DNA of 124,000 nt from Octopus vulgaris. Lineage: Eukaryota. The stretch lies in NCBI GenBank assembly GCA_951406725.2, contig OX597815.1:35484001-35608000 (forward strand). The letters run 5' to 3'. Made by a program: the position numbers and the translations under genes. Below the pieces are notes generated by a model. That model ran no database searches, had not been told where the DNA came from, and saw nothing but the letters and a program-made list of their open reading frames with translations. Below, in pieces: positions 69,937 through 103,912 of the stretch; positions within the stretch are counted from its first letter, which is position 1, and the number at the start of each line of letters is the position of its first letter.

Positions 69937-70087
69937 ATGATGTTTAACCCCAGATTTTTGTCTTTTTCTTGGACCAGAATTAATTACCAAGTTTTTGCTC
70001 AGCACAAACTCTTCAAAAACCCTACAAGATATTACTGTAAACCCAAAGCACTGCAACTTAAATATGATGCTGTTATTATTGGAGCAG
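69937..70087 (+). CDS. PYROXD2: PYROXD2 exon 1 (coding part)
   Basis: [20 protein letters not shown]...[10 protein letters not shown]; weak donor GTTTTC. Confidence 0.85.
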
Positions 70088-73000
70088 GTTTTCTTCGTCT
70101 TTTCTGATTTAAATTTTTTAAATTATTCTGTGTGCTTTGTTTCTTCGATTTTAAATGTCAATATTATTTTAAAGAAGATATTTTGTTAATCGCTTATAGG
70201 TTAAAGCCCTTCACTTGTATTCCATTAGTAAGGGAAATGCATCAATATTACAATATTACAAGGGTTCAGAGGGAAGGGCCTTCGTCGATTCTATTGACTC
70301 CAATACTTCACTGGTACTTTATTTCGTCGACTTTGCCTTTCATCCTTTCGGGGTCGATAAATTAAGTACCAGTTGCGCACTGGGGTCGCTGTAATCGACT
70401 TAATCCGTTTGTCTGTCCTTGTTTGTCCACTCTATGTTTAGCCCCTTGTGGGTAGTACAGAAATAGGTACTTTATTTCATCGATCTCTAAAGGGTGAAAA
70501 GCAAAGTTAATCTCCCCGATGCCAACTCTGCTTTTCATCCTTTGGGGGGGGGGTCGATAAAATAAAGTGCAAGTGCAGTACTGGAGTCAATGGAATCGAT
70601 TAAGGCCTTCCTCTTATTATAATTCTATGGCTGCGAGCTGGCGGAATCGGTAGCACACTGAGCAAAATGCACGTTAGACTTAACCTTTCTGCACGTTCGA
70701 CTTAACCTTTCATCCTTTCGGGGTCGATAAATTAAGTACCAGTGAAACACTGGAGTTAATGTAATCGACTACTTACCTCCCTCAAAAATGTCAGTCCTTG
70801 TACTTTTAATAAAAAGAATTACTATTGCTATTATTAAGGCAGCGAGCAGGCAGAATCGTTAGCGCGCAGGGCAAAAATACCTAGCAGTACAGTAATAGTT
70901 CACTTTACAAGGACCCGCTTTACGAGATCCTGGATTTACGAGTTTTATTTTTCAAGCACAAGCTCTTTTCTTTTTTTTTTTTGAACAAAGTGCAGAAGTT
71001 TCTACTACCATAACAAATGCTTCTGCATATTACTAAGAAATTTATAGAGAGTGTTTTTTTTTTTTACGAGTGTGTAACGTTTAGGTTTTAATTAGTATAG
71101 TTACCAATCGTAACGGGTAAGATTGATTAGGTACACAATAATATGAAATGTCGGAGTCAGCAGTTGTAACGATAATAAGAAGAGTGGTCTCGGTGCGCGC
71201 ACTCGCGTACTCGCGCATCCGCGCTAGCTAGTCGTGGCTAGTCGATCCTACAACGACTACCCAGCAAAGTAAATAAAACAGAAAATAAATAATTTTTTTA
71301 ACACAAAGTAAATAATTTTTTTAACACAAAGTAAATAATTTTTTTTTTCTAAACAACGTAAATAATTTTTGTTAACAAATTAAATAGATATAACACACTA
71401 CCCGTTTTTGGTACCCCCATTATACTCTTAAAACGTCGTTTTATGTTTTAATAACTTTCAACCGAATTTGTATGAACATTTGTTATCGGATCGACAAAAT
71501 TTTCGCAAGGGTTCATACCAGCATCAGTTGTCATGCGATGTTGGCGGGGAGGAACAAGCACAGACACACAAACATATACACACACATGTATATATATATA
71601 TACATATATACGATGGCCTTCTTTCAGTTTCCGTCTACTAAATCCACTCACAAGGCTTTGGTCGGCCCGATGCTATAGTAGAAGACACTTACTGAAGGTG
71701 CCATGCACTGAGACTGAACCCAGAACCATGTGGTTCGTAAGCAAGCTACTTACTACACAGCCACTCCTATGCCTATGGAAAACTAGCAACAACAATAATA
71801 ATAATTTCTTTCTAATTTTGGCACAAGGCCAGTAATTTTGAGTGGTTGGGGTAATTGATTACATTAGCCGTAGTGCTCAACTAGTACTTATTTTATTAAC
71901 CCTGAAAGCAATAAAGGCAAAGTCGACCTTGGTGAGATTTGAACTCAGAACATGAAGATGGGCAAAATGCTGCTAGGTAACAGTTTAGCCTTATGAGTGG
72001 ATTTGGTAGATGGAAACTGAAAGAAGCCCATCGTATATATGTATATATATATATATGTATGTGTGTGTATATGCTTGTGTGTCTGTGTTTGTCCCCCCCC
72101 CCCCCCCCCAACATCACATGACACTGATGTTGGTATGTTTACATCCCTGTAACTTAGTAGTTCGGCAAAAGAGACCGATAGAATAAGTACTAGGCTTACA
72201 AAGAATAAGTCCTGGGGTCGATTTACTAGACTAAAGACGGTGCTCCAGCATGGCCACAGTCACATGACTGAAACAAGTAAAAGAGTAAAGAGTAAGAGTA
72301 TTGAATGCAAGGAAATTTCTGAAGTATGTTTCACAATAGATTATTTTAAACCCCTCTTCATTTTAGTTACTTATTCTGTGATTCATTTGTGTTAATTATT
72401 CTATGACTTTCATTCTCTTTGTTATTCTTTGATTCATCTTCCTCTCTCTTTCTGTGTTTCAGGACACAATGGATTGATCACTGTAAGTTGAAGTTCAATT
72501 TTTTTGCTTTACAATGTTTTAATTCTCTCCTGATTAATTTAGATTAGATCTCTCATTCACCCTGTCTTTTTTCTTCCTCTAGTCTCTCTTCTCCTTTTTC
72601 TCTCAGGGATGTGAGAGTAGGGGCAGAAAAAAGAATGATTTTGATACCAAGAAGATGGAAGAATGCAAAGATGTGGTCAAATGCAATGACACCTTCAATG
72701 CTTAAGCATATGGTCCACCTCAATACAATCTACTCTCTCACCCTCATTTTGAATCCAACAGTCTGATGGGAAAGACTTGATTGTTTCAATAATCTGATTC
72801 AAGTAACTCTACATTGATCTTTATTCAATGGCTCATCCCATTATTTCTGGGAGGTGATAGCAGTTATGGAGATAATGATTTTTTTTTGGGGTGGGGTTGT
72901 TATTTAGTCTTAAGTCAGCCATGATCTAGAAAAGCTTAATTCCAAAACTGTTTCAACTACAGTTAACATACTTCCATTTTAAGATAGTGGGAAGATTTGG

Positions 73001-75190
73001 CTGCTATTTCCAGTAGGGTAAGCAATTATGTAGAGGCCTTCATTCCTCTTTGGCTCACTTGTGATACTTGTGGCAGTGATGGTGAATTTAAGAAGTTAAT
73101 CTTTCAATTTATTAAAGTAAACAATTAAGTCTTCAAATGAACCACATGTTTGAGCAGTCAACATATATTATTAACAACTATTCCTTTCGCAGGCTGCCTA
73201 CCTACAGAAAGCTGGCTTGAAGGTTTGTGTCTTGGAGAAACGTCATGTAATTGGTGGAGCAGCTGTAACAGAGGAAATAATACCAGGTAAGTGTTTCATA
73301 TAATTAAACCTTAAGTAACTCATTGTTTTAATGTCTACCTTTTCCAGACATACATGGGAATTCATTGTGGCAGGTTTTCTACAACTAGTCACCTTGCCTG
73401 TCACCAACACTCAGCTGTTTCCAGGCAATTTTCCATACAGGGTTTACATATGTACATAACTGACAGGCCCCTGATATTAAATAAAATGCTAAGCACTTAT
73501 AGTATGGAAATTAATTGCTACAGCTTTGTATAGCTACTGGATTCGATGAGTATACAAACAGATTGGTTGCTTGTTTCTCTGGGATTGATCAAATTGATGT
73601 GGAAACTTCTAATGAGAACCCAATAATGAAGGCAGGAGAATACATCAGCCGAAACATTATGATGGCAACAAACAAGATGAGGACACCTATCAGTCCATTG
73701 TAAATAATAATGTACATAATTCCTCATCTCAAAAATATAGAATAGTATAATCAGTCCCAGTACTGGACTTTATTTATTGACCCTTGGCAGGGATGGAACT
73801 CAGAGTGCAGAAGACCAAAACAAATACCACTGCTGCTGCAACTATAACAACAACAACTGCAACTACTACTACAACTACTACTACTACTACTACATACCTT
73901 GTTTGTTGTCTCACCGTTGTTCTAAATTCTATTGTACTGGAGTTTATTTTGTGTCATTCCTACTTAATCTAATGAAATCAAGTCGGCAGATGATATAACT
74001 TCCTGCTTACAAAAATAAAAATGTTTCTAATCAAAGCAAGCAATTATTATATAATTCAATGTCCTTTTATGTAACCCCATGTACATTTGATGCCAAACTA
74101 GCCATGTAATTGATGCTACTCCTACTAATCATTCTAGGATTCAAGTTTTCCAGAGCTTCATATCTGCTGAGTTTGTTACGGCCACAGATTTACAAAGATT
74201 TGGAACTGAAGGTATATCATTTATATTCTTTTACTTGTTTCACTCATTGGACTACAGCCATGCTGGTGCACTGAAAGGTTTAGATGATCAAATCAACCCC
74301 AGTTCTTATTCATTTGTAGAAGTCTGGTACTTAAATTATGAGCCTCTTTTTGTTGATCCACTAAGGTTCAGGAATGTAAATAAACCAACACCTGTTGTTA
74401 ACAGTTGTGAAGTAGTGAGACAAACACAGGCACTCACACTCATATACATACATACATGGTTGGCGTTAGGAAGGGCATCAAGCTGTAGAAACTCTGCCAG
74501 ATCAAATTGGAGCCTGTGATGATGATGATGATGGTGGTGGTGAGAAAAATGTCAGAATTTTTTGTAAAAGTCCTTTTATTTCTTCATTATTATTATTATT
74601 AGCGCTTTTGTTCCTCTCAAGAACTTATAAAATACAATTTTGTGAATGTACAAACAGCTTGTTCATTTATATAAAACAGACGTTTTTTTGAGGGGGGATT
74701 GTTTAGAAGAGAACATTGTTTGTTTTTTTGGGGGTGAGGTTCCAAGACAATGGAGATGGATAGATATAAATATAGGTAGGTAGATAGGCTGACGGATATG
74801 AATGGGTAGAAGGAAAGAGAGAGAGAAAAGGTATCCACCTTCCTATTCACCATTCATTCATTTATTTAATTATTTTCCCCTTACCATTATATTGGAATGG
74901 GTTTAATGATGGTGACCACTTAAAAAAAAGAAAGAAAGAAAGGAAAAACAGGTGTGGTTTGGTCATCACTGAAAGTCTTTTTGCTTTCTTTCTATTTCTC
75001 TTCTTTCTTTTTCCTTTTTCCCTTTCTTCTTTTCATTTTTTTCCTTTTTCCTCCATTCTTTTTCTCCTCTTTGAGTTATATTTAGAATATACCCCTTCCA
75101 AACATTCATTTTTGGAGGGAAGTTTTTGATACATGAAAATACATTAGTATAATATTTGCAAATTAACAAATAAAATAAAACGAATATATA

Positions 75191-75221
<31 letters not shown>

Positions 75222-78200
75222 CTACGTAAAGCTAGAACATCCCAATGCTACACATATGTATCTGAACAGGTTTAGAGATGAGCTACATTTAGAATAAAGA
75301 ATTCAAATTCTCCATTTTACCTTCAAACATTCAATTTTAGGGAGGATTCCTTGATGAAGTGTGAGTGTGTGTGTGTGTGCATGTTTCCTTGTGTGTGTGT
75401 ATTTGGGAATATGTCCATGTTTATACTGTGTAACTTTGATCACACCTCTTTCAATTCCATGATTTTGCATTAGAAAACATTAGTATAACACTTACAAACA
75501 TACTGTCTCTGCTTTTCTTTCAAACATTCAACTTTGGAGAGAATTTTTTGATGAAATGTAGTTCCATTGCTTTTCGGTATTGCGGATCATCCCATGCACA
75601 TTTGTAAAAGGGAAAAATTTTGAATTTTCCATCGCCACATATTTCTAGATACTTACTTAATGGAATCTTGCGTAATTCCAGATGCTTACTTAATGGAATC
75701 TTCCTTAATTCTTCTTGTTGGATATGTTGCCTGTAGATTCTTGCACGTTGGCAGAGGGAATTATTTGCTTTGCCAATGTAATTTTCTTTGCAGTTTGGGC
75801 AGGTAATGTAGTATATGAGGTTTTGCGTTTTGCAGTTCATATTTATTTTAAAAAGGAATCTGATAGATGTATGTGTGTGTGTGGGTGGATGTGGCATGGC
75901 TGTGTGGTTAAGAAGCTTACTTCCCAACCATGTGGCCTTGGGTTCAGTCCCGCTGCACAACACTTTGGGTGTCTTTGCTAAAGTGGATTGGGTACATGGA
76001 AATTGAAAGAAATCTATCATGTGTGTGCGTCTGTGGTGGAGGTGCATGTGTATTTGTGTGTGTTTGCTCCCACAGCTGCTTGACAACTAGTGTTGGTTTG
76101 TTTATGTCCCTGTAATTTAGCCGTTCAGTAAAAGGGTCTAATACAATTAATACTGAAGTTAATTAATTCAGCTAAAACCAATCAGGGTGGTGTCCCAGCA
76201 TGGCCACAGTCCAATGACTGAAACAAGTAAAAGCTAAAATGTAACGATAAATAATATATACACACATATATCCATATGCGTGCATACATACATATATTTA
76301 TTCATTTATTTGTATTTATGACTAGCAGTATCACTCAGCGTTGCTTGGGTTTGTTTCGACCCTTTCGAATTGGAATTTTTGAAAAGTAAAAATTTAGCAT
76401 TATGTAGACAATGTATCCAACCATATCACAAAATAACTACATATCTGTATTACTAATATATTTAGCTTCTGCAAAGGCAATAAATTTACAAGAACTGTAA
76501 GAGCATTAGACACATCCATTGTGATATTTCATTACATCCTGTAATGACTTCACTTCAATTCCTTCTGAGAACAACTGTGCCTTTTGTCCTTTTCAGGTCA
76601 ATGGAATAAATTACTGGGGTAAATTTAATCAGCTATGCCTTCTCCAGAATGTATGGCATTGTACTAATGTTAGAAAGCAATATATTTAGGTTGTGCAATG
76701 AAAGTTTTAAATGAACAACTGGAAGTTGTGTGTTAAAATCATAACTAAGATTGTACAGAATTGAAAAAAATGGAAGGTGGGTTGATCACTTTTTAAATGC
76801 AAGCTTCGGAGCTTAAAATAATGAATTCAAACATTTTATTTCAACTACTTGATTATGTACATAGACAAGTTAAATATGAAGCTCATTTAAACAAGTTAAA
76901 TATGAAGTCATGCCCCATGTTTCACTGCCATGTAGCATGGCTGTTCATACACATGCATCATACAGTCTACCTTTTACTCTGAGCGAGAGGCCCTTTGTTA
77001 CCAGCAGAGGTAGGAGCTCTCTGAACTTTGTCCAGGCTATTCTGATTCTAGCAGCTACTCTTTCAGAGCATCCACCTTCTCACTACTGACTTGGTCATCT
77101 AGGTAACAGAAACTATCAAATACTAGTAGTTTTTCTCCCTGGAATGTGACAGAAGCTGTTCTCTGCACATTTTCAGTATTTATTGCTTCTGAGCATTTGC
77201 CACGTACAAAAACTATCTTCCCAATTAGCCTTCCTTTGATATTGCCGCACTTCTTAAATGCAAGCTTCAGAGTTTAAAATAATGAATTTAAGCATTTCCC
77301 TAAGATCAAGCAGGTCCATCTACCTGAAGGGATTTGTGGTTTGTCTGCCTTTCTACTTATTAAGATTTTGGTTTTAGCTAGGTTGACTCTAAGGTCCTTC
77401 GATTCTAATCCTTGCTTCCACACTTGAAACTTCTCCTCTAGTTCTGATAGTGACTCAGCAATTAGAGCAAGGTCATCAGCATAGAGGAGCTCCCAGGGGC
77501 ATCCTGTCTTGAATTCCTCTGTTATTGCCTGGAGGACTATGATGAATAAGAGGGGGCTGAGGACTGATCCTTGGTGGACCCCTACCCCTACCCAGAATTC
77601 TTCACTGTATTTGTTGCCAACTCTCACCTTACTGACAGCATCCCTGTACATGGCTTGCACAGCTCTCACTAACCATTCATCTATCCCTAGTTTTCTCATT
77701 AACCACCAGATAAGGGGATCGGGGGAACCTGTCAAAGGTTTTCTCCATGTCAACAAAAGCCAGGTACAGAGGCTTATCTTTGGCTAGGTATTTCTCCTGC
77801 AGCTGTCTTACCAGAAATGTAGCATCAGTAATGCTTTTCCCTGGCATGAACCCAAACTGCATCTCATCTAGGCTGACTCTTTCCCTAATTAGTTGGGCTA
77901 TGACCCTCTCTGTGACCTTCATTACCTGATCCAACAACTTGATCCCTCTGTAATTATTTGTATCTAATGTGTCACCTTTACCTTTGTAGCAGTTGACTAT
78001 GATGCTGCTACACCAGTCATTGGGTATGACTCCTTCTTGTATCACTTGGTTGACTATATGGGTGACTAGGCTATAGCCAACACCGCCAGATATTTCGAGC
78101 ATCTCTGCAAATGATTCCTAATGGGCTGGGGGCTTTCCCTGTCTTCATACCCTTAATTGCTTTATCTACTAAGGTATTGTCAATTTGGATGGCTGGTGCC

Positions 78201-79606
78201 TCTGTTGGGTTGGCATTCAGCAGACTCTCTTTTTCCCATTCATTCACTTTATTTAGTAACCTTTCATAGTGGTATCTCCAAACCTCTCTCTTTGCAGCCT
78301 CGTTTAATGCAAATGAACCATCATCCATGACATCACAATTCTCTCTCACATAGTCTTGCAACACAAAATAGGTCAAGTCTTTGGTACTCATGGTACAGAA
78401 CATTGGCAAATTTTTTTTTATCTGCTTCCCCTCTGGCTAAATAAACCTGTCTCCTAGCTCCCCTTCAGGCAGTCTGATACAATATATATATATAGATTAT
78501 AATAAGAGATATATACATGCATATGTAGTTTATGTATGTTTAGTTCTGGTATGTTGATGTAGTTTATATATATATTTAGATTTGGTAGGTGTATGTTTTG
78601 ATGTCATATGTCTGCACTGCATACTCACAAATAGAGATGACATAATGATTGTGTAATTTTATCTAGTGCAAATAAATTGCCAATTTTCATTTCATCAGCT
78701 ATACTACAATGCATTATAACATACAATTTGCATACATCAACTGTCAAGCTAAGCTGCTACCATTTAATTGTTGTAACAGCAGCCAAAACCACTGTGACTT
78801 GAAACTAAGAAGGAAGATAGTAAGCACATATTCAAGCACAGATAAATACTAGCCACAGGAGAATGTAAGAAATTAAGAATGGTAGTCTGTATCACTATCA
78901 CATAATGTCAAAAATTTAGGTAGCAACACTTGGTGCTGAGTTGTTATTTTCATATCCTGTTCAATATTTACAAAACGGGTCTCCTGTTCTAAATTTACTT
79001 TACATTTCTTTCAATATTTATAAATAAAGTGTATAGTTATTTAAACATTAAGGTGTTTATTTCCAAGAAACTATTATCTTGTCCATAATCTTCTTTGCAC
79101 TCTGTATTCAAAACCACAGTTTACAAATCCTGTATGAGTATAAATAAAGAGGTTTTTAACTACATTCATAAGTTTTCTGAAGACAGCATCAAATTTTAAT
79201 GTAAACATAACTTTATTCTTTCATTTCTTTTTCCAGAAATATGGGTTAAAGATCTTTCTAAGAAATCCAAGTTCTTACACACCGTTGTTGCAACCAAATA
79301 GTTCAAATCCCAAAGCTAAATCTCTCACACTGGGACGAGATGGCCACCTTAATAAACTGCAAATTGCTCAGTTCTCTCAATCTGATGCTGAGGTAAAGAA
79401 TCATAAATTCATTTATTGTAAACACAAATATGTTTTATAAATCTATGTAACATAATAATGAAGGTTTATTAAATGAAGGTTCATAAAATGCATCTTCATT
79501 CAAATTTTTGCACCTATATTATGAAGATATTTTTCATCTTCAATTCCAGTCAACATTTACAAAACAATATTTCACAAACATTTCTAACAAAGGTATAATA
79601 CTGTGA

Positions 79607-79654
<48 letters not shown>

Positions 79655-81150
79655 TTATATTTATTTACAAATATTTCAGAAATTTGAAAGATATGAAGAG
79701 CAATTACAAAGAATTGTGGATTCTCTGGATCCTTTGTTAGATAATCCTGCTCTACATTTACCAACTTTCAATGAAAGAGGGATTAAGAAATACATAGAAT
79801 TATGGTCATCCTTGAATTCTTTTGGAAAGTCTAGTAAGTTGTCTGTGTTATTCTTTTACTAGTTTCACTCATTAGTCTGTGGCCATGCTGGGGCAAATCC
79901 TCAAATGGGGTAGTTGATTATATCAACACTAGTATTTGGGAGATATATTATTTCATTGGCTTCAGAAGTACAAAAGGTTAAGCTGGTCTCAACTAAATTT
80001 GAAATCAGAATCTAAAGGGACAATATACCACAAATTATTCTGTCTGATATTCTCTCAAATTTGATAATATTTCTGATATTATGTTTCTAAATATTTAATA
80101 TGGGTCTTTTTTTACCCGCCTTTTATCATAAGCCATGGTGTTGGTTTTCTATATCCCTTTAAGTTTATACCACCTCCACAATAATCTACAGTTTCTCTAT
80201 TAAGAAAGAAAGATATATGGCAGTTCAATATCTGCTTCAATGACATGAAAAAATGGTTTAAAATATAAGAATCCTTTTGTTTTATTTGGGTTTTTTTTAT
80301 TTACTGGTAAAAGGTAAGATAGTATCTTCAAGAGTTTTAATGTATTGATGAGATGCAGTTTGGTTTTGTACCTGGAAAGAGTACCACAGATGCAGTAAGA
80401 CAGCTGCAGGAAAGGTACTTGGCCAAAAGTAAGCCTTTGTCAACCTGGAGAAAGCTTTCAACAGAGTTCTCAGCTTTGTTATATGGTGGTCTCTAAAGAA
80501 GTTAGGAGTTGAGGAGTAGCTTGTTAGAGCTGTACAAGCCATGTACATTGGTGCTGTCAGTAAGGTGAGAGTTAGCCATGAATACAGTGATGAATTTAGC
80601 ATACAGGTAGGGAGTCACCAGGGCTCAGTTCTCAGCCCACTCTTATTCATTATAGTCCTTCAGGCCATAACAGAGGAATTCAAAACTGTGCCCATAGGAA
80701 CTGTTATATGCTGATGACCTTGCTCTTATTGCAAAATCTTTAGCAGAATTGGAGAAGAAATTCCAGATATGGAAACAAAACCTGGAATAAAAGGGCCTTA
80801 AAGTTAACCTAGCAAAGACCAAAGTTGTTAGTAAGAAAGAAGATAAAACTCTCTTTCCATCGGGTAAATGGCCCTGCTCAATATGTAGGAAAGAAGTTGG
80901 AAGAAACTATGGACACATAAGAGGTGCAGTGGAATCACAGGTACATTAACAGATAAAGTTGTCTTTACAGTTCTATATTTAAGAGATGAGGAATTATGTA
81001 CATTATTTACAATTGACGGATATTTGTCCTCATCTTGTTTGTCGTTAACACAACGTTTCGGCTGATATACCCTCCAGCCTTCATCAGGTGTCTTGGGGAA
81101 ATTTCGAACCTGAGTTCTCATTCCTAAGGTATTTTTCGAAGTTGTTGTTG

Positions 81151-81219
<69 letters not shown>

Positions 81220-81298
81220 TCACTGCCTGGAATCGAACTTGGAATCTTGTTGTTAGTAGCCGGTGCTCTTAACCACTATGCCATATACTAAGTAGTGA

Positions 81299-81340
<42 letters not shown>

Positions 81341-84300
81341 TAACAACAACAACAACAATGTAAATAATGGTGAAAATACCTTTGTTGTTTATTAGCCACT
81401 TCACTTTTGTAGGAATACTAAATACCCACATACATACACACACACACACATATATATATATAGAGAGAGACAGACAGACAGACAGACAGATATCATAAGA
81501 GTGGGTTTAATAATAATTTCTAACTTAGAAACAAATACTGACATGAATTCAAATACCATTTCAGTTCAGAAATGCAAGGCCCAAAACTCGAAACTACTTA
81601 CAATGAAACATTGTGTTATGTTGATTTCAAATTTTGGCACAAGGCCAGCAATTTCAGAGGAGATAAGTTGATGTAAACCTCCCTTCATTGGACACTAAAT
81701 TCTGCTTGCGAAGACCTGTTGGGGCAAGTGAAATCGAAATTTTAAACTCAGAACATAAAGACAGACAGTATACTACTAAGCATTTAGGCCAGCTGGCTAA
81801 TGATTCTGCCAGCTTGCAAAGAAAAGGGTAAGGGGAAAATAATGGTGGCATATTGAATGTTGTTGGGGTTTTTGATACTCTGACAATATCATCAAACATT
81901 AATTTGCATATCTCCATTCTACAGTCATGGACTGATCCTGTGCAGGTGGCACGTAAAAACTTATACATTTGGCAAGTAGGTTGCTAAAACCCAAGATGAG
82001 CAAACACAAATACATGGTAGACAAAAGCTAAAAGACCGTGACCATGCTCGGAGTGGTTGGCGTTAGGAAGGGCATCCAGCTGTAGAAACTCTGCCAGATC
82101 AGATTGGAGCCTGGTGCAGCCATCTTGTTTGCCAGTCCTCAGTCAAATTGTCCAACCAATGCTAGCATGGAAAGTGGACATTAAACGATGATGATGATAA
82201 TATACAAGGGGCTTCTTTCAGTTTCCATTTCCCAAATCCATTCACAAGGCTTTAGTTGGCTTGGGGCCAAAATAGAATACACTTACTCAAGGTGCCTCAT
82301 AGTGGGACTGAACCCAGAAACTTATGGTTAGGAAGCAATCCTCTTACACACAACCACAAACAAATAATTTTTTTATTTTAACCAATTACACTAAATATTT
82401 TCTCTTTTGAAATGTCAACATTTTGTTCTATTTTTAGTAAAACAACTGAAACATGATAAAACAGCACTTCTCGAGTTAATGACAGCCCCTGCTTCCAAGG
82501 TTAGTTTCACTCAATGTCTTGTTTTCATTTGTCCAACAAATTTTCTGCTTGGAAAATGTTGAGAACCAAGAGGGCTGTCCACACTGATTCTATCATGTTT
82601 GAAAAAATGTGATTGTCTCTTTTTTTTCTGTGTGTGTGTGTGTGTGTGTGTGAAGTACCAATGGTCCTCATAAATATCCACTAGACTGGGGAAATATATA
82701 CAACTGATGTTCAGTTTCAACTTGTGTAGGTTAATGCCCGTAGAAAAACAATGGATTGAGAAAACGTTCTCAGGGGTCTGCAGTTCTTGGGAGGAATAAC
82801 TAGTAAAAGTGTTTATGGGGAAGATTGGGATACACAGAATGGTGAACGAGAGAAGAAGAATTGATGCATTCAGTGGATTAGGCAATGGTGGTACGAAGCT
82901 TGTTAATTAAGAAGGGGAGAAACTATTGAAATAGTGGCAGAGGATATGGATAGAAAAACATGTCTGATTGTAAATTAGTTTTCTGCAGTCGATCAAATGA
83001 CCTTCTTTTATATATGTTCTAGAATGTTGTATTGTGTGGAACAGCCCCATTCTCAATATGTAAACATTGGAGTCTTGTTTGTGCTTTGTAGAAGATTAGC
83101 TACTGATCAGAGCTAAAGTGCATCTTAGCTCTGAAGATGTGTCATAGTCTTTAGGATGTTGATTTAATAATGTTGTATATGTGGTTACCATAGTAAATTA
83201 CCAGAGACAACAATGTGTTACATTTGTTGCAACTTTGAGAGTTTTAGTTGTGTGTTGTTTAAAGTTAGGTGGTGCAATGTTGCAAGAGTGTTTTCTTGAC
83301 ATGTGAGTGAGTGTTTTAAGTCAGCTGTAGGAAATTAGGTTGCGAGTCTCTGCCTGCTAGAAAATATCTAAGCACCCACTACACTCTCAGAGTGGTTGGC
83401 ATTAGGAAGGGCATCCAGCTGTAGAAACTCTGCCAGATTAAGATTGGAGCCTGGTGCAGCCATCTGGTTTGCCAGCCCTCAGTCAAATTGTCCAACCCAT
83501 GCTAGCATGGAAAGCGGATGTTAGACGAAGATGATGATGATGATGATGACTTCTATTTATGGAAATATTGAATATCTTTCATGGTGTGCTTAAATCCTGG
83601 ACAGAAAGTTAAAGGGAAATAGAAAATTATACCATTGGGTAGAGATTTGTAAGAAGTAGGAGGAAATAATTTCACAAAAGGAATTACGTTACCAGTGTTA
83701 AATGAATGTTAGAGAGAGCCTCAGTATAAACTGTGATGATGTAATGTTTCTGATAGACCCATTTGTCAGAAACTTTGGAGGAGCTGATGTCAGACTGTGT
83801 CGATGTTTTTTGGCAAATTTCACCTAAGTTCTGAATGAGAAGAGCCTCCTGGTGTGTGACAGGGAAAGAAGTCTCAGATAGATATGATTCCACAGAAGCC
83901 ATATTGTTAGTCACAGATGAATAATCCTCTCATCAACGATCAACAGTGATCTTTTTTCTTTTTGTCAATTTCCAAATGTGTATTCTGACTTCTTTACCCT
84001 GGGGTACACCTTGACTTAACACTACCCTAGCTATCATTAATACTCAGTCCCAAAGGCGGCAAGCTAGCAGAAATGTTAGCACACCAGACAAAAGGCTTAG
84101 TTGTATTTCACCTGCCATTATGTTCTGAGTTCAAATTCCGCTGAGGTTGACTTTGCCTTTCATCCTTTCAGGGTCATTAAATTAAGTACCAGTTACTCAC
84201 TGGGGTTGATGTAATCGACTTAATCCATTTATCTGTCCTTGTTTGTCTCCTCTATGTTTAGCCCCTTGTGGGTAATAAAGAAATATAATCCCCAGTCCCA

Positions 84301-87300
84301 AACTTATTGTATCAATTCTACTTTATATATTTGTTCTACAATCTCTGTTTACTATATACGACTTAACTTATTTCTATTTAATTACTCCTAGTTTATCTAG
84401 TTCGGGTTTTTATGTGAATTAAAATTACTAGGTCTGCCTTGATCTTCTTGTACCATTCCTTCTTAAACCAGCCTCACAATTATTTGATGACATTGATACT
84501 TTCAGGTTTTGAATAAATGGTTTGAATCAGAACCCCTGAAAGCCAGTTTGGCAACTGATGCTGTGATTGGATCAATGACCAGTCCTCATCATTCAGGTAG
84601 TGGGTAAGTCAATAGCTTCATTTATTCCTATCATCATTAGTTATTTCTATTCAACAAAACCAAAGGTAGCTGAAAAACACCATAACAAGTGAGACAGGTT
84701 TGTTTTAATAGATATGTGCATACATATGTAGCAGTTCTTGCATGCATGAAGTGGATTCGATCCACCACAGCCAAATTTAAATTAACGCTGCCACAGAACT
84801 TTTCCCATGGTGGAACAATGGTTTTTCTCTGACAGCAGTTTTACATTTTCCAGATGCCTTTAGCTAAGCCGAAATAATGTCTTCATCACTTGACTCTTTC
84901 TAACCTCTTCTACTTCACCAAAAGCTAGAATAGAGATAACACGACTACCAACTAAATCTATTGTTTTCAATGAAATATCTATCCTTCTGGATAGTTATAT
85001 AAGCAAGCACACCCCAAAATCAGTTAGTCACAGTCGGTGATGACTCAACAAAGTCTGGCTGACCAGCTAGAACCTTGGTCTGAGGGAGAAATGAAGTTTA
85101 CTGTCAGCAACTGTGAGACAACGTCCCTCATCTTACAATTCTCATTAGCTCTGATTCTGCTCTCTTACAACATCATTCTATCTCTCTCTGTAATTACTAC
85201 TACTAAACAATGAAGAGGATACAAACACAAACTTTACTTTGCATACTTTTGGATTTAGCATAACCTGCCTGTCGAGGCAAGGTATTTGTTACATAACGGT
85301 AAATGAATATTTCCTTTATACTTCATGCATTGTTCATCTTTCACATCCTACAGCAAGCAATTATAACAACAAATTATTACCGTTACACATATATCACAAT
85401 TTATTTTTTAATCAATGTTCAAGCTGTATCCATTCTGCTTTGGTTTCAGAGGAATGTGTATTGGACTGCAATTTGTGTTTCCTTTCTTAAATAATGTGGC
85501 TTAGTTGTGAAGGCACATGGCTTAGTGGTTGGGTTATTTGCTCACAATCGTATGGTCATGTGTTCAATTCCTAATAGTGCATTATGTCCTTGAGCAAGAC
85601 ACTTTATTTCATGCTGTTCCAATCCACTCATCTGGAAAAACTTAGTTTTACCTGTAATCCAAGAGGCCAGCCTTGTCACACTCTGTGTCATGTTGAATCT
85701 CCCTGAGAAATATGTTAAGGGTACATGTGTCTGTGGAGTACTCAGCCATTTGCATGTTAATTTCATTGAGCAGATCAACTGCAATATTCATCATCATAAC
85801 CGATGGAGTGCCAGTTAGTTAAAGTGGTGTAAGGAAAAAGAGGTTTGACAATTACAGCAACATGTTGTGTAGCTACATAAAGATTCCATCACTAGTTGTT
85901 AAATGCCCATTCCTACTTTCCAGAAATGTAGTGGTTGATTAATTAAAGTTCTGTCTTACTGACCTGGAGATGCTCAATTCAAAATAACTCATAGAAATCA
86001 ATAGCCATATCATTTTAAATACTTATTGAAATATCTCTCTGAACTGTGAAGTCAGTCTTTCACTTAAATTCCCTAAAGAAGGTAGAGTAATCTATCTTGC
86101 CTGTTATTACAACAACAGACTTTACACTCTGTTTACTCTCTTTTACTTGTTTCAGTCATTTGACTGCAGCCATGCTGGAGCACCGCCTTTAGTTGAGCAA
86201 ATCGACCTGGGACTTATTCTTTGTAAGCCCAGTACTTATTCTATCGGTCTCTTTTGCCGAACCACTAAGTGACAGGGACGTAAACACACCAGCATCGGTT
86301 GTCAAGCAATGCTAGAGGGACAAACACAGACACACAAATATATACACACACATACATGCTGGCAGAAACCTTAGCACGCCGGGCGAAATGTGTAGCCGTA
86401 TTTCGTCTGCCATTACGTTCTGGGTTCAAATTCCGCCAAGGTCGACTTTGCCTTTCATTCTTTCGGGGTCGATAAATTAAGTATCAGTTACGCACTGGGG
86501 TCGATGTAATTGACTTAATCCGTTTGTCTGTCCTTGTTTGTCCCCACTGTGTTTAGCCCCTTGTGGGTAGTAAAGAAATATATATATACATATATACGAC
86601 AGGCTTCTCTCAGTTTCCATCTACCAAATCCACTCACAAGGCTTTGGTTGGCCCGAGGCTATAGCAGAAGACACTTGCCCAAGATGCCACGCTGTGGGAC
86701 TGAACCCAAAACCATGTGGCTGGTTAGCAAGCTACTTACCACACAGCCACTCCTGTGCCTGTTTACATTTATATGCCATTTGGTAGCCAAGTGGCTTACA
86801 TTTTCAATATTCGCACAACAATCAGAATAATTTTTTTGCCTAGTTACAGAGAAAATTTTGACAACAGATTTAGATACATCAAAACAATTTTTTGTATAAT
86901 TCGCTTTTGTCTGCTGAGGCCTTTTTGGTCAATATGACATTTTTAAATGGTAAAAACAGTCTCCTTCTCCTTACATTACTGCTATTAGAAAATGTGATTG
87001 CACATTGAAATTGATCTCAGTTTTTATGGCTTTAAGCTATTGCATGGTATTTCTTCCTTCATATAAACTACTAGTTTGTTCTAAGGTTGACTTGTGGCTA
87101 AATTCGACATATGCATCGCTAGTAGCCAACAAGACCCTCATCAATTATATATATGTTCTTACTGTTTACAGTGTTGTTGTTGTTGTTGTTAAGCAACAAA
87201 ATGGGTAAGGGTGATTAGGTGATAATCTAGGGCTTTGTGGCGGGAAACCCCAGACCTTGAAGGAAAAAAAAAATTTGGTCGTCTTGTTGTAGTCGAGGGC

Positions 87301-90300
87301 TCTTCGTTGACGCCCGACACCACTGGGAGGTGGCCCTCGAAGTCGCTGGAAATGGAGATTTCCAGGTCCAAATTCTTGGATGGTTGTTTACAGTGTTGAA
87401 CCATCAAGGTTAACAGAGCCATTAAGACTTTTGTCTTTAAAAGGAATATATACCTTCCTCAGAAATATAAATAGATATGATATGAAATGCAAAAGTCTTT
87501 TTGAGTTGATATATAAAATGTATTTATTGTTACAGATATGTATTGCTGCATCATGTGATGGGTCAGCTGGAAGGTGTGAAAGGTGCTTGGGGTTATGTCC
87601 AAGGTGGTATGGGTTCAGTCTCTCAGGCAATTGCTAATTGTGCCACAGACCAAGGTGCAGATATTTTCACAAACAAGGTATTGCTTTTTTATTATTCTTA
87701 ATCTTTGTTTGATTTTTACATTTAGTTCTTTCTCAGATGAATATTGTTACCTTCCAGTGTCAACTGCAGAAACATACCATGAATTTTCTGATCTTCCAAT
87801 AGATATTCCTATCTGTAGAAATATATGACACGATTACTGTGAGTTTAGGGTACTGCATTACTATTCACTAAGTCATAAACTGAAATGCATAAGTCAATTT
87901 GCCCCAGTTTGTATGACTGATAAGTAGTTCAAACCTTTTTGTGACTGTATTTTGAAAATAATTAAGAATTTGGATTGATTTAGTAAATTAACATTTTTAT
88001 TATTATAATTAAACTGGTTTTTGGAACATAGTTTAATAAATATTTCTTAATATAAAATTATGATAAAAAGTTTTAATTTAAATGTAAAGAGTTTAAAAAC
88101 AGAATCAGAGACAATCTCAAGCAGGTTGGCATCAACATGGTTAAATCCTGTTTCAAAGATGACAAGATAGTGATATGAAGGACAGTCAAGGTGACAATTT
88201 TTACTCTGTTAATAAACACTCCACTCTTTATAATATGCAGAATTAGAAGTAAATTATTAAAATATCAAATAATATCCACTAGTCAAATGGTCGTTTTATG
88301 GCTTGTATTGTTGATATAAGATGCTTAATCTCAGATGTGATAAAGGTGAACTAAAGAGTTCAACTTTATCAGTATGAATATCTACTGAATAAATTATCTC
88401 AAAATCTACCCAAATAACACATGTAATTATATTCTTCAATCTTATGACATAATGTGAGATTATACAGTATTATCTTTTCTTATGTTCATGTGTCAAAAGA
88501 TTTGTAAAATGTATATTATCAACACCACCTTTCTTAATTTCATTGCAATCTATTGGAAGTTAATATTTTCTCTGTTGACATCCATCTCAGTTAATTTTGC
88601 TTTTCTCCCAATTCTGGGCTTTCTTGAAGAAAAGCCCTTACATAACTGAGATGCAATCTCAACCCAAAATTTCATATCATCATAGTCCTTTGGTAATGGA
88701 GGTACCTAGTGGCTTTTTACATAAACAATATATGAATTAACAATAGCTAAATTCACAAAAAACCACAAAATGTACCTCCGCCATTTCTTTCCAGGCCATC
88801 CAACTGGGTAGTATGCCCAATACTGGTTGGAGTTGTCAATACTACCCATCAGCTTTGCCACAGTCAGATTGAATGAAACAAGTAAAAGAATATCTGTGCT
88901 ATAGCATGCATACCACCACATCAGCATTCTGAGCATACTTGAAATTGTTTTATTTTGTACTTATAGAAAATTTGAGGTACCCCACTGGGCTGTGTGTTGT
89001 GTTCTTGAGCCAAACACTTCATTTCACATTGCTCCAGTCCACTCGGCTGTAAATAAATAACCCTGTGACAGACTGGCATCCTGTGCAGGTGGAATGTTTT
89101 GATCTTGGTTATTCACAATGGGGTGCTGTAAAGTTCCTGGCTTCAAGGGCATTGGGAAAGGTCTGATTAGAAACCAAACCTTCTCAGTTTTTTTTACAGG
89201 GCTTAGAAAAACTGAAGGACTGCTGCAATAAATGTGCGAATCTGAGAGGGGAATATGTTGAATGAAGTTATAATTAACTGATCCGCCTATATTTTCTTTT
89301 ATCCAAAGCCAGGAACTTTTCAGGAGCCCCCTCATATATACCATAGAAACCAGGTAACTGGCTCTATGATTCCTGAGACTGGAGATACTAATGTCCAAGG
89401 GTTGAGGAGGAGGAATAGTCATAGGATACCTCAGAATAAAATAAGAGTAGAAAAATGGTTTAATTTTTATCCAATAAAAATATGGATTCAGTTACACTTT
89501 TCACAAATAACTTCAGTTTTTCTTTTATCACTTCAAGCTCCCAAACTATTTGCTAATAAAACAAAAGTATAACATTTATCCCTTTCAAGAATAATATATA
89601 ACTAAATTTATTTCATTATACATTTATATGTAACTAATATATAATATATATAATTTATAACTAAATTTATTTCATTATACATTCATTTGATTGGTTATAT
89701 TCACTTGCACTTATTCATTGACAAACCCCAATACTTCGTTTTTGGTTTTATTCATACAATTGCAGTAGCTAAGACAGCAGAGTACTAAATCGACTACTTC
89801 ATTGTAATGCATCTAGTTTTGTATTTCATAGATATCAATAGAGTAATAAACTATTCCATTTCAATTGACTCTAGCTTGACTTTGCACCTAATCAAAAGAA
89901 GTATTTATTCTCAGGTCAACCCACTGTTATCTCCCTTGTATTTTATTCCAGCCTGTCAGCACCATTCTGATAGAGAACAACAGAGCTAGAGGTGTTGTTC
90001 TAGAAGATGGTACTGAAGTAATTGCTCGAGCAGTATTGTCCAATGCCACTCCTAAAGTTACATTTTTGGATCTTCTTCCAAAAGTCAGTATTTTTTTAAT
90101 TAGTAAATTATTTGTATTTATTTGCCATTTCCTTTTCCTTAATGCATTTTCTCTTTTTTCTTGTTTAGAGTTATGGCATAATTAAACCAATTTTCAGAAA
90201 TCTGTCCTGCTTCAGACATAGTTTATTATGTTTGAGAAGGACATAAATGTACTTTAAGCACAGCATAGCAAGGTGTGTTCGGTGATGAGGCAGTAAAATG

Positions 90301-91014
90301 TGTTTTGATGCAAGTTATTACTTAAGTATGTGAGATACAGTGCTATAGCAAGATGTTTGATGTGATATAACAAGATGTTTGATGTGTTACAGCAAGATGT
90401 TTGATGTGATATAACAAGGTGGTTGATGTGATTTAGTAAGATGTGTTTGGGGTGAGGTACAATAAGTTCTAATGAAGGTGCTGTGCACTGGTTCTATACT
90501 AAATATTTGACCAAAATACAACTGTCAAGAATCCAGTCCATCTAGATGTAAATAGGTTTTAAAGAATAGTACAATTCCTTGTTGTAAGCAATAGGAGGAT
90601 TATATAGTTGAAACAGGTCTTCAAGACTGCAGTACACTGGCTAACTCTTCCTTCTCTGAGACTAATTCAGAGCCTGTGAAGTGAGAATCAGTGGAGGTTT
90701 TAGGAAGAAGAAAGATGAGTGAACTGTAAGATCTTCCCCATGACTTTCGGAAACATTTTTTCATGCTAAAAGTTGCTGAAGCATGGAACAAACTGCCGGT
90801 ATCAGTTGTTAGTTGTTGGAGCACTGCATCCTTCAAAACTTCCATGCTTCCTGAGATTTGCCAACACTACACCTGATTTTCTCCCTTCCATACACACGCA
90901 AGAATGTATCTGACTCATACACTGTTCACTTTCCAGACATTTGTACATTACTGCATACGCTTTATATGCACTTTTGACAAGTTGTGGTGCACCTGAGCAC
91001 TGTATACAATAATT

Positions 91015-91070
<56 letters not shown>

Positions 91071-94000
91071 GGGTATGGGGCATATAGTTCAGAAAAGAAG
91101 CCATTGTAATAGCAATAGAAGGAGAGCAGAAACCCTATTTGTGAGTAAGTTGTTGCTGCATGTAGGTGAGTGCATCATTGCCAATCAGTTTAATGATTGG
91201 CAATCTGTTGAATGTGAGCTAGTGTGTGTGTATGTGTACATATGTGTGAGTGCGTATATAGTAACATCCCATTTATGTAAATAGTACTCCACTTCATCTG
91301 GTAACTGTCAAGTAAATAATATATTTAACTCACAAGAGATCAATATAATCCTTTCTACAGTAGGCACAATGCCTGGAATTTGTAGGGAGTAGGATAGTCG
91401 ATCAGATTAACCCCAGTACTTGACTGGTTCTTAATTTATCTACCTCGAACAGACAAAAGGCAAAGTTGGCCTTGGCAGAATTTGAACCCAAAACGTAAAG
91501 CATTTTTCCCAGCATGCTAACAATTCTGCCTGTTTGCTGGTTTCAACAACAGATCAACATAATGTTGACAGAATTATCAACATTGTTTTCCAGTAGAGTT
91601 TAATAGCCATTACAAAGTAATTTCTGAAGAAAATTATAGAACATCATAGAGAATATGAATTAAGCTTCAGAGAACTTACTACACCAAATATAAATGAAAA
91701 GCTAAAAAGAGGCAAAATTATGACACCTTTGTGGTTTGATCTGAATGTTACTAATCAAAATCTTTCCTACTTTCCCAATCTATCTTTTCTAAAACTACAT
91801 TCCTCTTGAATTACTTCTTTGTCTATGTTTTTACTACAAACAAACCGAATATGCACAGTTTTCATAGGTCCTGCAAACATCATTATCACTGGTCATCTTC
91901 CTTCCACTATCTTATTTTTAGATGTTAGAAATCTAAAATTGGTTTACAGTAAAGGTAGATGAAGTAAAATTAGATGAAGTAGATGAAGTAAAATTAGATG
92001 AAGTCAAGTTTCTAATTTGCAATATTTCAGGGAACCTTATCCACTGACCTTACCAAAGAAATAGAAGTGATAGATTATACTTCACCAGTGACAAAGATCA
92101 ATGGTAAGAAAAAAATTGTGCTTTCTTTTATATTTATTTATTTATAATAAAAATTAGCTTTCTGCACATGTGTCTACAGGCAAGATGTTTTGAGGAAGAC
92201 TGGCAGTTTGTATGTGGCTGCTCATTTTGCTAGAAATGATAGCCAAATCTCCTCTAAACTTTTCCATACCATTTTTAAAATGACTGAATATACAGAATAA
92301 TATAATTCTGAATATAACATGTAAGAAAAAAAACCAGGCTTGGGCCAAATATTCAGCACCCTTGGCCCAGCCCTACCAATTACATGACCTTCTTCCAGTC
92401 CAACAAAGTGTAACCTGCTTTTCCCAATCCCACAATAAATCTCCAATTTTTCCCCTGAACATCCTTCTGCTATCTCTTCCTTAGAAAATACAGTCAGAAA
92501 ATTAATTAATTACAAACAAATAATCAAGTAAATTTTTACTTGAAATATTTCATGTTGAATCATGTGGCAGGTCATAACACTACATAGACCTCTCACCCTG
92601 CCTTGCCACTTACCCATGTCCTTTCTTCTTTGTTCCAAGAATGACCTCACTTCCTTTCATTCATGTTTCAAACTGTATTAAGAAATTTTGAGTAGGTTAC
92701 TTGATGTGGGAGGACCCTGATTTTAATGCCTGAGGCAATCAACCAGTTTATCTAATGCATAACACTTGCAACAGTTCCCTATTAATGACAGGAATGTAAC
92801 AGTCTCTCTCAATCTTTTGATTACCCATCATCATCATCATCATTTAATGTCCACTTTCCATGCTAGCATGGGTTGGACAAGTTGACTGAGGTCTGGCGAA
92901 CCAGATGGCTGCACCAGACTCCAATCTGATCTGGCAGAGTTTCTACAGCTGGATGCCCTTCCTAATGCTAACCACTCTGAGAGTGTAGTGGGTGCTTTTA
93001 CGTGCCACTGGCACGAGGGCCAGTCAGGCGGTACTGGCAGCGACCATGCTCAAATGGTGCTTTTTATGTCCCATATTTAACAATGTAAATTATATTGAGG
93101 TTTAGCAGTGTAACAACAAAGCAATCAAATAAAATTAAAGCTTTGAAAAGCTAACTTATTTGAGAGGAGTGGTAGTGGATCTGATGTTTAGAAATAAAGT
93201 CAAATAATTGAATAAATAATTTATTTAAAGTCATAAAAATTGCTAATTGAGATTTTTCTTTTTTCCTTCCAAATACCAACATGTTATTTTAGTCGCTGTG
93301 AAAGAGCTGCCCAACTTTACTGCTGATCCAAACACCAAGAAGAACACACCAATGCCACATCACCAGTGTACCATCCATTTAAACTGCGAACACACTGATT
93401 TAATTCATCAAGCTTATCTCGATGCACAAAATGGGTATCCTTCACGCAAGTAATAGAGAATTTCAACTTTTGAGCCTTTGTTGCTTAGTTCTTACTATCT
93501 TATACTTATTTTAGTCATTGAACTGTGGCTATGCTGGAGCACTGCCTTGAATGATTTAGTCAAACAAATCGACCCCAATACTTATTCTATCAGTTTGTCA
93601 AACTGCTAAGTTATGGGGACATAAACACCCCAACACCTGTTATCAGGAGATGTGGAGGCAAATACAAATGCAAGACACACACACATATATTTACATATAC
93701 AACATATTTCCATTGTTTCCCTCAACTAAATTCACTCACAGACATTGGTCAGCCTGAGGTTAAAGTAGAAGACACTTGTCCAAGGTGCCACACAGTAGGA
93801 CTGAACCTGAAACTACATGGTTGAGGAGCTAGCTTCTTAACCACAAAACCATGTCTGCACCTAGCTGTTGTCATTGCTGTTGTTATTATATATGATATTT
93901 TAAGTTAACAGTTATATACTATTGTTTGTTAATATTATATCAGTATCATCATCATATCTCATTCTTTCTCCTAATCATCATCATACTACAGTCCTCATTA

Positions 94001-97000: not shown

Positions 97001-98199
97001 CAAATCTTCATAAGTGAAACTTGGTAGCTTGAAACTGACTGGGAGTCTGTTAGAGAGACCATTTTTGTTATTGGATAGTAGAATTTAATCTATCTCTCAA
97101 GTTTAATACCACAATCTGATACTTGAGTTATTTGTGGAACCCACTCTGTTGCAAGCCTCCAGACAAGTTCTCTGATCTGTGGATCAATTCTTCTTTTCCT
97201 CCAATCAGTCTCAGATATTCTGAGAAGAACCATGGTTGATTCCTTTCTTCTTCTGACCAAGCTATTTTTTTGACAATATACCATGCTTGAGGAGACTCGT
97301 CAAGCCTTGTGAAATCATAATTGTGGCCAATACTGGTGTCACATAACTGGCATCTGTGCCAGTGGCACATATAAGCACCCATACCATTGGCACATAAAAA
97401 GCACCCGTCACACTCTTGGAGTGGTTGGCATTAGGAAGGGCATCTAACCATACACACCATGCCACTTGGTGCATCTTTCCAGTTTACCAGTTCCAGTCAA
97501 ACCGTCTAACCCATGCCAGCATGGAAAACGGGTGTTAAATGATGATGATGATGATGGTGATGGTGATGATGATGATGATGATGATGATGTCAGCAACAAA
97601 ACTCGAGATCCTCTGATATTAAGAGAACACGAGATAAAGCTCCCTTGGACAGGATGTTTGGCTATCACAGGTAATTTACTCCCTATCTTACTAAAGCCTG
97701 TCCTGTACTTATCTCTGGGTGAGGTAGGCTGAGGCAATGCAAAATTAAATGTCTTGCCTTAGTGCACATCAAAAATCCGAGTGTGATCATTGCCAGAGCA
97801 GCTAACTGGCTTCTGTGCTGGTGGCACGTAAAAAGTACCATTTGAGCGTGATCGTTACCAGTGTTGCATTACTGGCACTTGTGAAAAAACATTTGAGTGA
97901 GGTTGTTGCCAGTGCCGCTGGACTGGCTCCTGTGCAGGTGGCACATAAAAAACACCACTTGAGCGTGGCCGTCGCCAGTACCGCCTGACTGGTCCTCGTG
98001 CCAGTGGCACGTAAAAGCACCCACTACACTCTCGGAGTGGTTGGTGTTAGGAAGGGCATCCAGTTGTAGAAACTCTGCCAGATCAGATTGGTGCCTGGTG
98101 CAACCATCTGGTTCGCCAGACCTCAGTTAAATTGTCCAACCCATGCTAGCATGGAAAGCGGACGTTTAACGATGATGATGATGATGATGATGATGATAA

Positions 98200-98233
<34 letters not shown>

Positions 98234-101200: not shown

Positions 101201-102172
101201 ACTATGTGAAGTGAAGTAGTTCCACTTTATTACCAATTCCCACTTTCTTGAATTTATGGAAGCCTAACAGCAACCACCATGCTTATCTAAAATATTTAGT
101301 ACCACACAATTTATACTCCGAAATATCAACTTCATATTTTGTTGCATACAAGGCACAGGCATGGCTGTGTGAGTAAGATATTTGCTTGCAGCCAAATCGT
101401 TTCAGGTTCACCCACAATATGCAGCACACTGGACAAGTGTTTTTGATTATACCAAGTGAATTTGAGACAAAAACTGAAAGAAGCCTGTCGTATGTGTATG
101501 TGTGTGATCATCACCATCATCATTTAGCATCTGCTTTTCGTGCTGGCATGGATTAAACAGTTTGACTAAAACTATTATGCTGGAAGCTGCACCGGGTTCC
101601 AATCTAATTTGGCATGGCTTCTACAACTGGATGCCCATCCTAACGATAGAGAGAATAGTGATGGTGATGATGATGGCAGAAATGCTAGTAAGGAAAATTA
101701 TTTTTAACATAAACATGTCACAAATTTAAATAGCGACTAGCCACCTTAATAATAATAATAATCATCATCATCGTTTAACGTCCGCTTTATATATATATAG
101801 CTATGTAGTTCAGAAGTTTACTTCCCAACCATGTGGTTTTGGGTTCAGTCCCAACATGGCACCTTGAGCAGGTGACTTCTACAATAGCACCTGAACAACC
101901 AAAACCTTGTGAGTGGATTTGGTTGATGGAAACTGCAAGAAAAGCTCATTGGATATAAATAAATGTGTGTGTGTGTGTGGAGGGGTGTATGTATACTTGC
102001 ATGTGTGTGTTTGTCACTCCTTGTCTTGACACCAATGGATAGATATAGCAAGTATTGCTGCCATACAAGTAGAGTCTTTAATAAAACATGTCAGGTAATG
102101 GAGAAATAATACCTTGTGGCAACAAAAAGTGCATCAAGGCATAGAAAATCTACCTCAATAAATCCCATCAGA

Positions 102173-102211
<39 letters not shown>

Positions 102212-102759: not shown

Positions 102760-102816
<57 letters not shown>

Positions 102817-103011
102817 TTTTGTATGTATGTATTTTCCAGTGTTTAATGATATTGAAAACTATGCCCCTGGATTTAAATCAAGCATCATTGGATATGACCT
102901 ACTGGCTCCACCAGACCTTGAAAGTACTTTTGGACTTACAGGAGGGGTGAGTTTTATTTACTATGTTTGTAGAAACTAAATCAAATCTACTAATCTCTAG
103001 CACAACCTTGT

Positions 103012-103053
<42 letters not shown>

Positions 103054-103877: not shown

Positions 103878-103912
<35 letters not shown>

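Follow-up and report, generated by a model that had tools for sequence, protein, structure and literature searches.

The Sm-alpha and Sj-alpha repeats of schistosomes are reportedly SINE-like and combine a tRNA-type Pol III promoter with a hammerhead in one short repeat. Ferbeyre et al. 1998 is the source for them as cited in PMC7761336. Minimal hammerheads are known from Penelope-like elements (PLEs), where they are recognised by a nucleotide located between 9 and 10.1, a G10.1-C11.1 pair, palindromic positions 15.2-16.2 together with a short helix I (Cervera & de la Pena 2014, PMC4209133). PLE insertions show 5' truncation, an inverted and likewise 5'-truncated partner copy and a 'tail' extension of 30-40 bp on one side (Craig et al. 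2021, PMC8557442). In non-LTR retrozymes, units of 150-350 bp that bear canonical hammerheads are repeated in tandem and give circular RNAs (PMC7229834).

Here we analysed a window of 124,000 nucleotides of Octopus vulgaris DNA (assembly GCA_951406725.2, contig OX597815.1, positions 35,484,001 to 35,608,000), in which a first-pass annotation had singled out a tRNA-headed element with a hammerhead tail. On comparison with related copies that carry an open reading frame (ORF), this element is very probably a 5'-truncated insertion of an octopus endonuclease-positive (EN+) PLE, of which only the last ~325 nt are left, an assignment that rests on sequence alignment. The element belongs to a known group, the PLEs with minimal hammerheads, known since 2014; no description of this octopus PLE family in its host group was found in the literature searched. 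The family resembles EN+ PLEs (PMC4209133, PMC8557442) in its minimal type I hammerhead with their hallmarks in the terminal region, in a reverse transcriptase (RT) with RYVDD followed by what looks like a GIY-YIG-type motif, and in frequent 5' truncation, an inverted 5'-truncated partner, an extension of 30-40 bp at one end and mostly solitary copies. Unlike the EN+ PLEs of the literature searched, the octopus element has an A/B-box module and an (AAT)n tract between the ORF and the hammerhead, and the few octopus copies examined showed no direct pseudo-LTR tandems.

The window copy and its neighbours in PYROXD2

Orthologous PYROXD2 loci were retrieved via proteins from four species, namely O. 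sinensis (L001), O. bimaculoides (L002), O. vulgaris (L003) and Argonauta hians (L004), and ten copies from these loci and the window, representing three insertion events, were aligned (alignment A3), in line with the first-pass view that the sequence belongs to a repeat family. Event A is the window element's own site, event B lies in the intron after coding exon 3 and includes a second window copy at ~73.6 kb, and event C is found in O. bimaculoides only; two further octopus loci (L005 and L006, 41 kb) contained no family copy. O. vulgaris PYROXD2 has its coding exons within 69955..106343 on the plus strand, and the window copy lies antisense, with coding exon 6 (79677-79838) on one side and coding exon 7 (82437-82502) on the other, in the intron 6 to which it had been assigned.

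From ATATGGC to its 3' end, the window copy aligns over ~325 nt with the 3' UTRs of ORF-bearing PLE copies (alignment A3 and alignment A4, the latter setting three ORF-bearing copies beside the window copy), and it is 100% identical to the O. vulgaris locus L003. It enters alignment A4 exactly at ATATGGC, with only an inverted arm 5' of that point, and has no ORF itself, so that its assignment to PLEs rests on the homology of its 325 nt to ORF-bearing copies. The features of the copy and the related copies are collected in Table 1.

Table 1. Positions of the PLE copy, its parts and related or adjoining elements (window coordinates unless a locus is named).
Feature	Position	Strand	Remarks
5'-truncated Penelope-like element (PLE) copy	80962..81286	-	3' UTR only: tRNA-like module, spacer, hammerhead tail, 3' extension
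tRNA-like module	81216..81286	-	A/B-box pattern; conserved in PLE copies
A box TGGCATAGTGG	81283-81273	-	
B box GTTCGATTCC	81238-81229	-	
(AAT)n(AAC)n microsatellite spacer	81141..81215	-	inside PLE 3' UTR
Minimal type I hammerhead motif	81047..81092	-	cleavage site predicted between 81052 and 81051
The family's most conserved block (ACAACAAACAAGATGAGGAC...GTAAATAATG)	81001..81046	-	terminates at 'short' 3' end
35-nt 3' extension (TACATAATTCCTCATCTCTTAAATATAGAACTGTA)	80966..81000	-	on one arm only per insertion
Inverted partner arm, 79 nt	81291..81369	+	last 12 nt of tRNA-like module, (AAT)n(AAC)n, AATGTAAATAATG
Degraded, 3'-truncated non-LTR LINE, RT fragment	80341..80968	+	tblastn, Pfam RVT_1, alignment A2; abuts 3' end of PLE copy, separate from it
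Second family copy (subfamily B)	73560..73750	+	intron after coding exon 3; hammerhead core degenerate
ORF-bearing independent copies	L002 1714-2668; L007 4219-6064; L007 2205-2713	-; +; +	ORF end, ~45 nt, head, spacer, tail contiguous

The (AAT)n(AAC)n spacer separates head and tail in every octopus copy that extends that far, and within the conserved block alignment A3 shows no variation at most columns of ACAACAAACAAGATGAGGAC, with one substitution (ACGAC) in the window copy. A short inverted copy had been noticed at the 5' junction; it is real, but forms only part of the 79-nt inverted partner arm, whose tail is internally deleted in O. vulgaris; its orthologues at L001 23506-23750 (O. sinensis) and L002 23286-23477 (O. 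bimaculoides) are complete. The degenerate second copy of the tail, also reported in the first-pass annotation, was recovered at 73615-73750(+) with 83-92% identity depending on the subfamily used as query, and its orthologues in O. sinensis and O. bimaculoides retain the spacer and part of the head.

The LINE that adjoins the window copy is one of four degraded copies of a single non-LTR LINE family in the window (78436-76948(-), 42996-42110(-), 58760-59343(+) and 80341-80968(+)), which has a PHD-type zinc finger after the RT and whose database relatives carry PF00078 and PF00628. A reading of the hammerhead tail as the antisense of this neighbouring LINE ORF was rejected: the alignment with three intact copies of the LINE stops at ~80968, and no match in the tail was obtained by tblastn when downstream peptides of the LINE served as queries.

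Several other signals were seen in this region. Long open frames extend over the tail on both strands in AT-rich DNA (80831-81214(-) and 73521-73769(-), with 128 and 83 codons); they have no Pfam match and are probably an effect of the A-rich sense strand. When an ORF read across the tail was used as query, the sole match was one O. bimaculoides 'protein', the UniProt entry A0A0L8FV75_OCTBM (P0001, 51 aa, 'uncharacterized protein'), which is an ORF across the family's non-coding 3' UTR, hammerhead included, and most likely a false gene model. The best Rfam match of a 20-kb scan was to mir-1287, at window 84492-84579(+), with 33 bits versus a threshold of 93; it overlaps PYROXD2 coding exon 8 (84503-84610) and is almost certainly false.

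The minimal hammerhead in the tail

Read on the minus strand, the motif has a helix I of GACAC/GUGUU, the core CUGAUGA (81087-81081), GAAA (81059-81056), C-G at 81055-81054 and U-U at 81053-81052, with cleavage predicted after 81052. The extra A that the first-pass annotation had placed after the core is present (81080), and helix II (GGCUGG/UCAGCC), given there as 5 bp, has 6 bp, including one G-U. The core CUGANGA...GAAA, helices I and II and the U-H at the cleavage site are those of a type I hammerhead, and all hallmarks listed in PMC4209133 are present in the window motif (A81080, G81079-C81060, C81055-G81054 and the short helix I).

A strict minimal-hammerhead descriptor has exactly one match in the window, at 81092-81047, and none in 532 Mb of simulated first-order Markov sequence, the core alone (CTGATGA..CGAAAC) having an expectation of 0.09 per window. 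The A/B-box pattern likewise matches three times in the window versus never in 100 shuffles, the other two matches being the SINE heads at 28650 and 34928. Given these chance tests, the A box, B box, spacer and hammerhead motifs had been correctly observed at first pass and are not due to chance.

The consensus of the family (alignment A3) bears this out, as it carries an intact hammerhead, while individual copies have decayed, mostly at CpG sites. In a check against hammerhead covariance models, suggested along with the first-pass annotation, Rfam scans at E<=10 returned no hammerhead-family match in any copy, which we infer to be because the models expect a closed helix III that minimal variants do not have. 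The absence of an Rfam match, together with the LINE RT fragment that adjoins the tail on the opposite strand, is what might be held in favour of a chance hammerhead match in ordinary repeat DNA. Such a match is exceedingly improbable, as the simulated sequence yielded no descriptor match and the motif recurs both in the consensus of the family and in another PLE family (see below), with compensatory changes.

Covariation, a further check suggested at first pass, was not detected in the hammerhead helices of the 10 octopus copies; the alignment was extended by the copies of two further events (D and E, see below) and by the second family (alignment A5, 13 sequences). In the extended alignment, 92% of the helix II cells are paired and compensatory changes occur twice in helix II (U-A to C-G, G-C to A-U); three pairs change on both sides, and the covariation score was reached in 2 of 500 shuffles, from few events. 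The changes lend modest support to the idea that helix II has been kept in active lineages.

To judge by its nucleotides, the motif is a genuine minimal hammerhead of the PLE type, with cleavage as a predicted property. Since there is no helix III, the motif would be able to cut only as a dimer, with two copies joined via the ACGU palindrome, which agrees with what has been published on PLE hammerheads. In the solitary, intronic window copy the hammerhead is most likely inert and does nothing.

Head, spacer and tail as the probable 3' UTR of a PLE

Extra inserted sequence lies between the two arms of event C, and L002:2515-2652(-), in the orientation of the longer arm, translates to REDETNKLSTVCLPYVKGLSEKIQKICGPYDIRAVFKSNTTLRKYL. 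In a full scan of protein representatives this peptide had 206 protein matches. The protein P0294 (545 residues) contains RVT_1 with RYVDD, then a stretch related to REDETNKLSTVCLPYVKGLSEKIQKICGPYDIRAVFKSNTTLRKYL and then IYNIPCSCGKSYTGETGR, and the closest relative is P0251 of O. sinensis, whose locus (L007) holds two further insertions, events D and E. Event D consists of a 45-nt inverted arm and a 1.85-kb PLE, in which RT, endonuclease region, ORF end, ~45 conserved nt, tRNA-like head, (AAT)4(AAC)3 and the hammerhead tail with its extension follow one another. At event E, an inverted arm reaching mid-head faces an arm beginning in the endonuclease region and continuing across the conserved 45 nt, head, spacer and tail.

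RVT_1 is also found in the ORF piece of L007 (...LWLRYVDDTFIL), in which the motif CVYSISCSCGRLYKSQT is visible, as IYNIPCSCGKSYTGETGR is in P0294. An RT followed by a motif of the IYNIPCSCGKSYTGETGR/CVYSISCSCGRLYKSQT type is an order that we take to be that of a PLE ORF with a GIY-YIG endonuclease. Pfam gave no GIY-YIG domain in these ORFs, even at E<=10, a regular expression for GIY-YIG motifs had no match over the first 340 kb, and a search of the PLE ORFs against PDB sequences returned generic RT matches only.

The tRNA-like head lies ~45 nt past the likely end of the ORF in three independent copies, which come from O. bimaculoides and O. sinensis. As ORF end, 45 nt, head, spacer and tail are contiguous in all three (Table 1), head, spacer and tail together very probably represent the 3' UTR of an autonomous PLE, with the order ORF end plus ~45 nt, tRNA-derived module, (AAT)n(AAC)n, hammerhead tail, conserved box and 3' end.

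The tRNA-like module occupies the same place in the PLE copies of events C, D and E. Its head is ~70% identical over 60 nt to the SINE head at 28650. ARAGORN found no tRNA in any copy, the CpG-restored consensus included, and the Rfam tRNA model at E<=10 had no match in any copy either. No description of a tRNA-like module between a PLE ORF and a hammerhead was found in the literature of the searchable library. As for tRNA-derived SINEs of other families, the window holds copies at 28650-28950(+), 34928-34983(+) and 115255-115500(+).

The first-pass annotation had read the head as that of a SINE driven by Pol III, and the locus could accordingly be viewed as a separate non-autonomous SINE with its start at the tRNA-like head, with Pol III transcription from the A and B boxes and with PLE enzymes that mobilise it in trans; copies linked to an ORF would then be its source or chimeras. 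The A and B boxes of the window module fit the consensus at normal spacing and are of the same kind as those heading the genome's true tRNA-derived SINEs (Ohshima & Okada 1994; window 28650, 34928). Every head of this type that we saw is linked to a tail; two arms at the PYROXD2 locus begin 2-5 nt before ATATGGC, which would fit a transcript start there, and 8 of 9 copies have no TTTT between head and 3' end. However, the lack of TTTT is expected in ~1 in 3 cases per copy at the given base composition and is thus weak evidence, and both arms that begin at the head come from one locus, whereas the 5' ends of the other arms are scattered. Among ~13 arms, 5' ends fall in the ORF (3), at the head start (2, both at the PYROXD2 site), mid-head (2) and 45-49 nt from the end (2), with the remaining ones within the head's final 12 nt, where the spacer ends and in the tail; instead of the pile-up at the head of a Pol III-driven SINE, this looks like truncation and not like a fixed transcription start.

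The position of the head provides the decisive test. In a true SINE the head is the 5' end of the element, whereas in the octopus PLE it is internal, 45 nt 3' of the ORF, which argues against a SINE. In all three independent ORF-bearing copies the conserved 45 nt and the PLE ORF lie directly 5' of the head, and the junction sequence is identical, which speaks against a random template switch. We therefore consider a separate SINE quite unlikely and retain the PLE 3' UTR as the preferred reading, in which the tRNA-like module would be a passenger or structural part of the UTR and not the start of a separate Pol III transcript.

The same layout recurs in a second, related PLE family, which was found at L008 2150-2640 and L009 4790-5310, on two contigs from ENA assembly ERZ21867824. 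Its ORF stretch is ~70% identical, and its ORF end is followed by a related 45-nt piece, a tRNA-like stretch with GGTTCAATCC as recognisable counterpart of the module at the same place, and a hammerhead (CUGAAGA-A-GGCCGG...UCGGCC-GAAA-UG-UU) with a compensatory change from U-A to C-G in helix II. There is no (AAT)n tract between head and hammerhead in L008/L009. With the layout shared between the two families, the tRNA-like module would be old in the PLE lineage and not a recent capture.

Integration scars and relation to other hammerhead repeats

A second, inverted arm is present at 5/5 events (A-E), four of which are head-to-head pairs, 5' end against 5' end. Every pair has one 'short' arm, ending ...GTAAATAATG, and one that continues for 35 nt (TACATAATTCCTCATCTCTTAAATATAGAACTGTA); four arms terminate at ...AAATAATG. 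Target duplications in related insertions measure 10-11 bp and read AATTTTGTGC at event C (10 bp), AATCARTCCCA at event B (flanks AATCAATCCCAC / AATCAGTCCCAG) and A(T/A)ATAAGTACC at event D. For the window copy's own insertion (event A) no target duplication was found; a GAAAATACCTT repeat is present at this site. Truncation, inverted arm, 35-nt one-sided extension and target duplications support the view that mobility of the family bears the marks of Penelope-type integration. The initial proposal of an element mobilised by Penelope machinery thus stands as far as the insertion marks go, but not in calling the element non-autonomous, since it is the 3' UTR of an autonomous PLE.

Under such a mechanism, the PLE's own RT and GIY-YIG endonuclease would make the insertion by target-primed reverse transcription from the RNA 3' end at a nick. 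Reverse transcription would often stop early, giving 5' truncation, and resolution of the intermediate would leave the inverted partner arm and the short one-sided extension.

Event C spans L002 1714-2851 of O. bimaculoides, with a 500-N assembly gap inside, and its site is empty in O. sinensis (L001 ~3205-3225) and O. vulgaris (window ~62700-62715), so that the family must have been active after these species split. Adjoining this empty site, ~485 bp (window 62713-63198) are present in O. vulgaris and absent from O. sinensis, probably as another insertion.

The arrangement at event A depends on the species and differs in all three regions compared (window 79999-81372, L001 23085-23765 and L002 23284-23482). 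O. bimaculoides has a single arm, the one on the plus strand, and at its orthologous site the LINE fragment (window 80341..80968) and the 340 bp to its left are missing, while O. sinensis has extra pieces, with the head in opposite orientation and with 190 bp and a 49-nt arm in addition. These differences may come from an unstable palindrome that was rearranged, from another insertion within the (AAT)n tract or from an error of the assembly.

The orientation of the arms also bears on the likeness to retrozymes drawn in the first-pass annotation. A non-LTR retrozyme would be a tandem-repeat element whose hammerheads release small circular RNAs; like the octopus element, metazoan retrozymes have a type I hammerhead and are presumed to depend on PLE enzymes (PMC7229834), and they are thought to derive from PLE terminal repeats (PMC7229834; bioRxiv 10.64898/2026.07.22.740005). 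Retrozymes, however, are tandem and said to be promoterless, whereas the octopus element is dispersed, with inverted arms that put its two hammerheads on opposite strands. None of the five events has direct tandem repeats or a direct partial tandem copy (pseudo-LTR), in a sample that is small and biased to truncated copies. The hammerhead, moreover, is of the minimal PLE type, with neither helix III nor loop-loop contacts, and the family has an ORF. As no tandem copies are seen, the element does not qualify as a retrozyme, an identity to which we assign very little probability, and an EN+ PLE remains the preferred reading.

The octopus element and Sm-alpha / Sj-alpha share a tRNA-type promoter motif and a hammerhead within one short sequence. 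Sm-alpha differs in that its hammerhead is canonical, including helix III and loop contacts, and that it has no ORF, whereas the octopus hammerhead is minimal and lies in the 3' UTR of an ORF-bearing PLE. We think it unlikely, though worth stating, that the PLE lineage keeps a working Pol III promoter in its 3' UTR, emitting short 3'-coterminal transcripts that are copied by its own enzymes; if true, the retroelement would be autonomous and yet contain a SINE of its own, which might show how SINEs that combine a tRNA head and a hammerhead, such as Sm-alpha, can arise.

The window element itself is a dead retroelement fragment in an intron. For annotation it calls for caution, as a tRNA-like head followed by a hammerhead tail resembles a new class of SINE and yet is a PLE 3' UTR. 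The sole unusual point is the conserved tRNA-like module in the 3' UTR, found in two PLE families, and a tRNA-derived module between ORF and hammerhead in both could bear on the origin of SINE-like hammerhead repeats.
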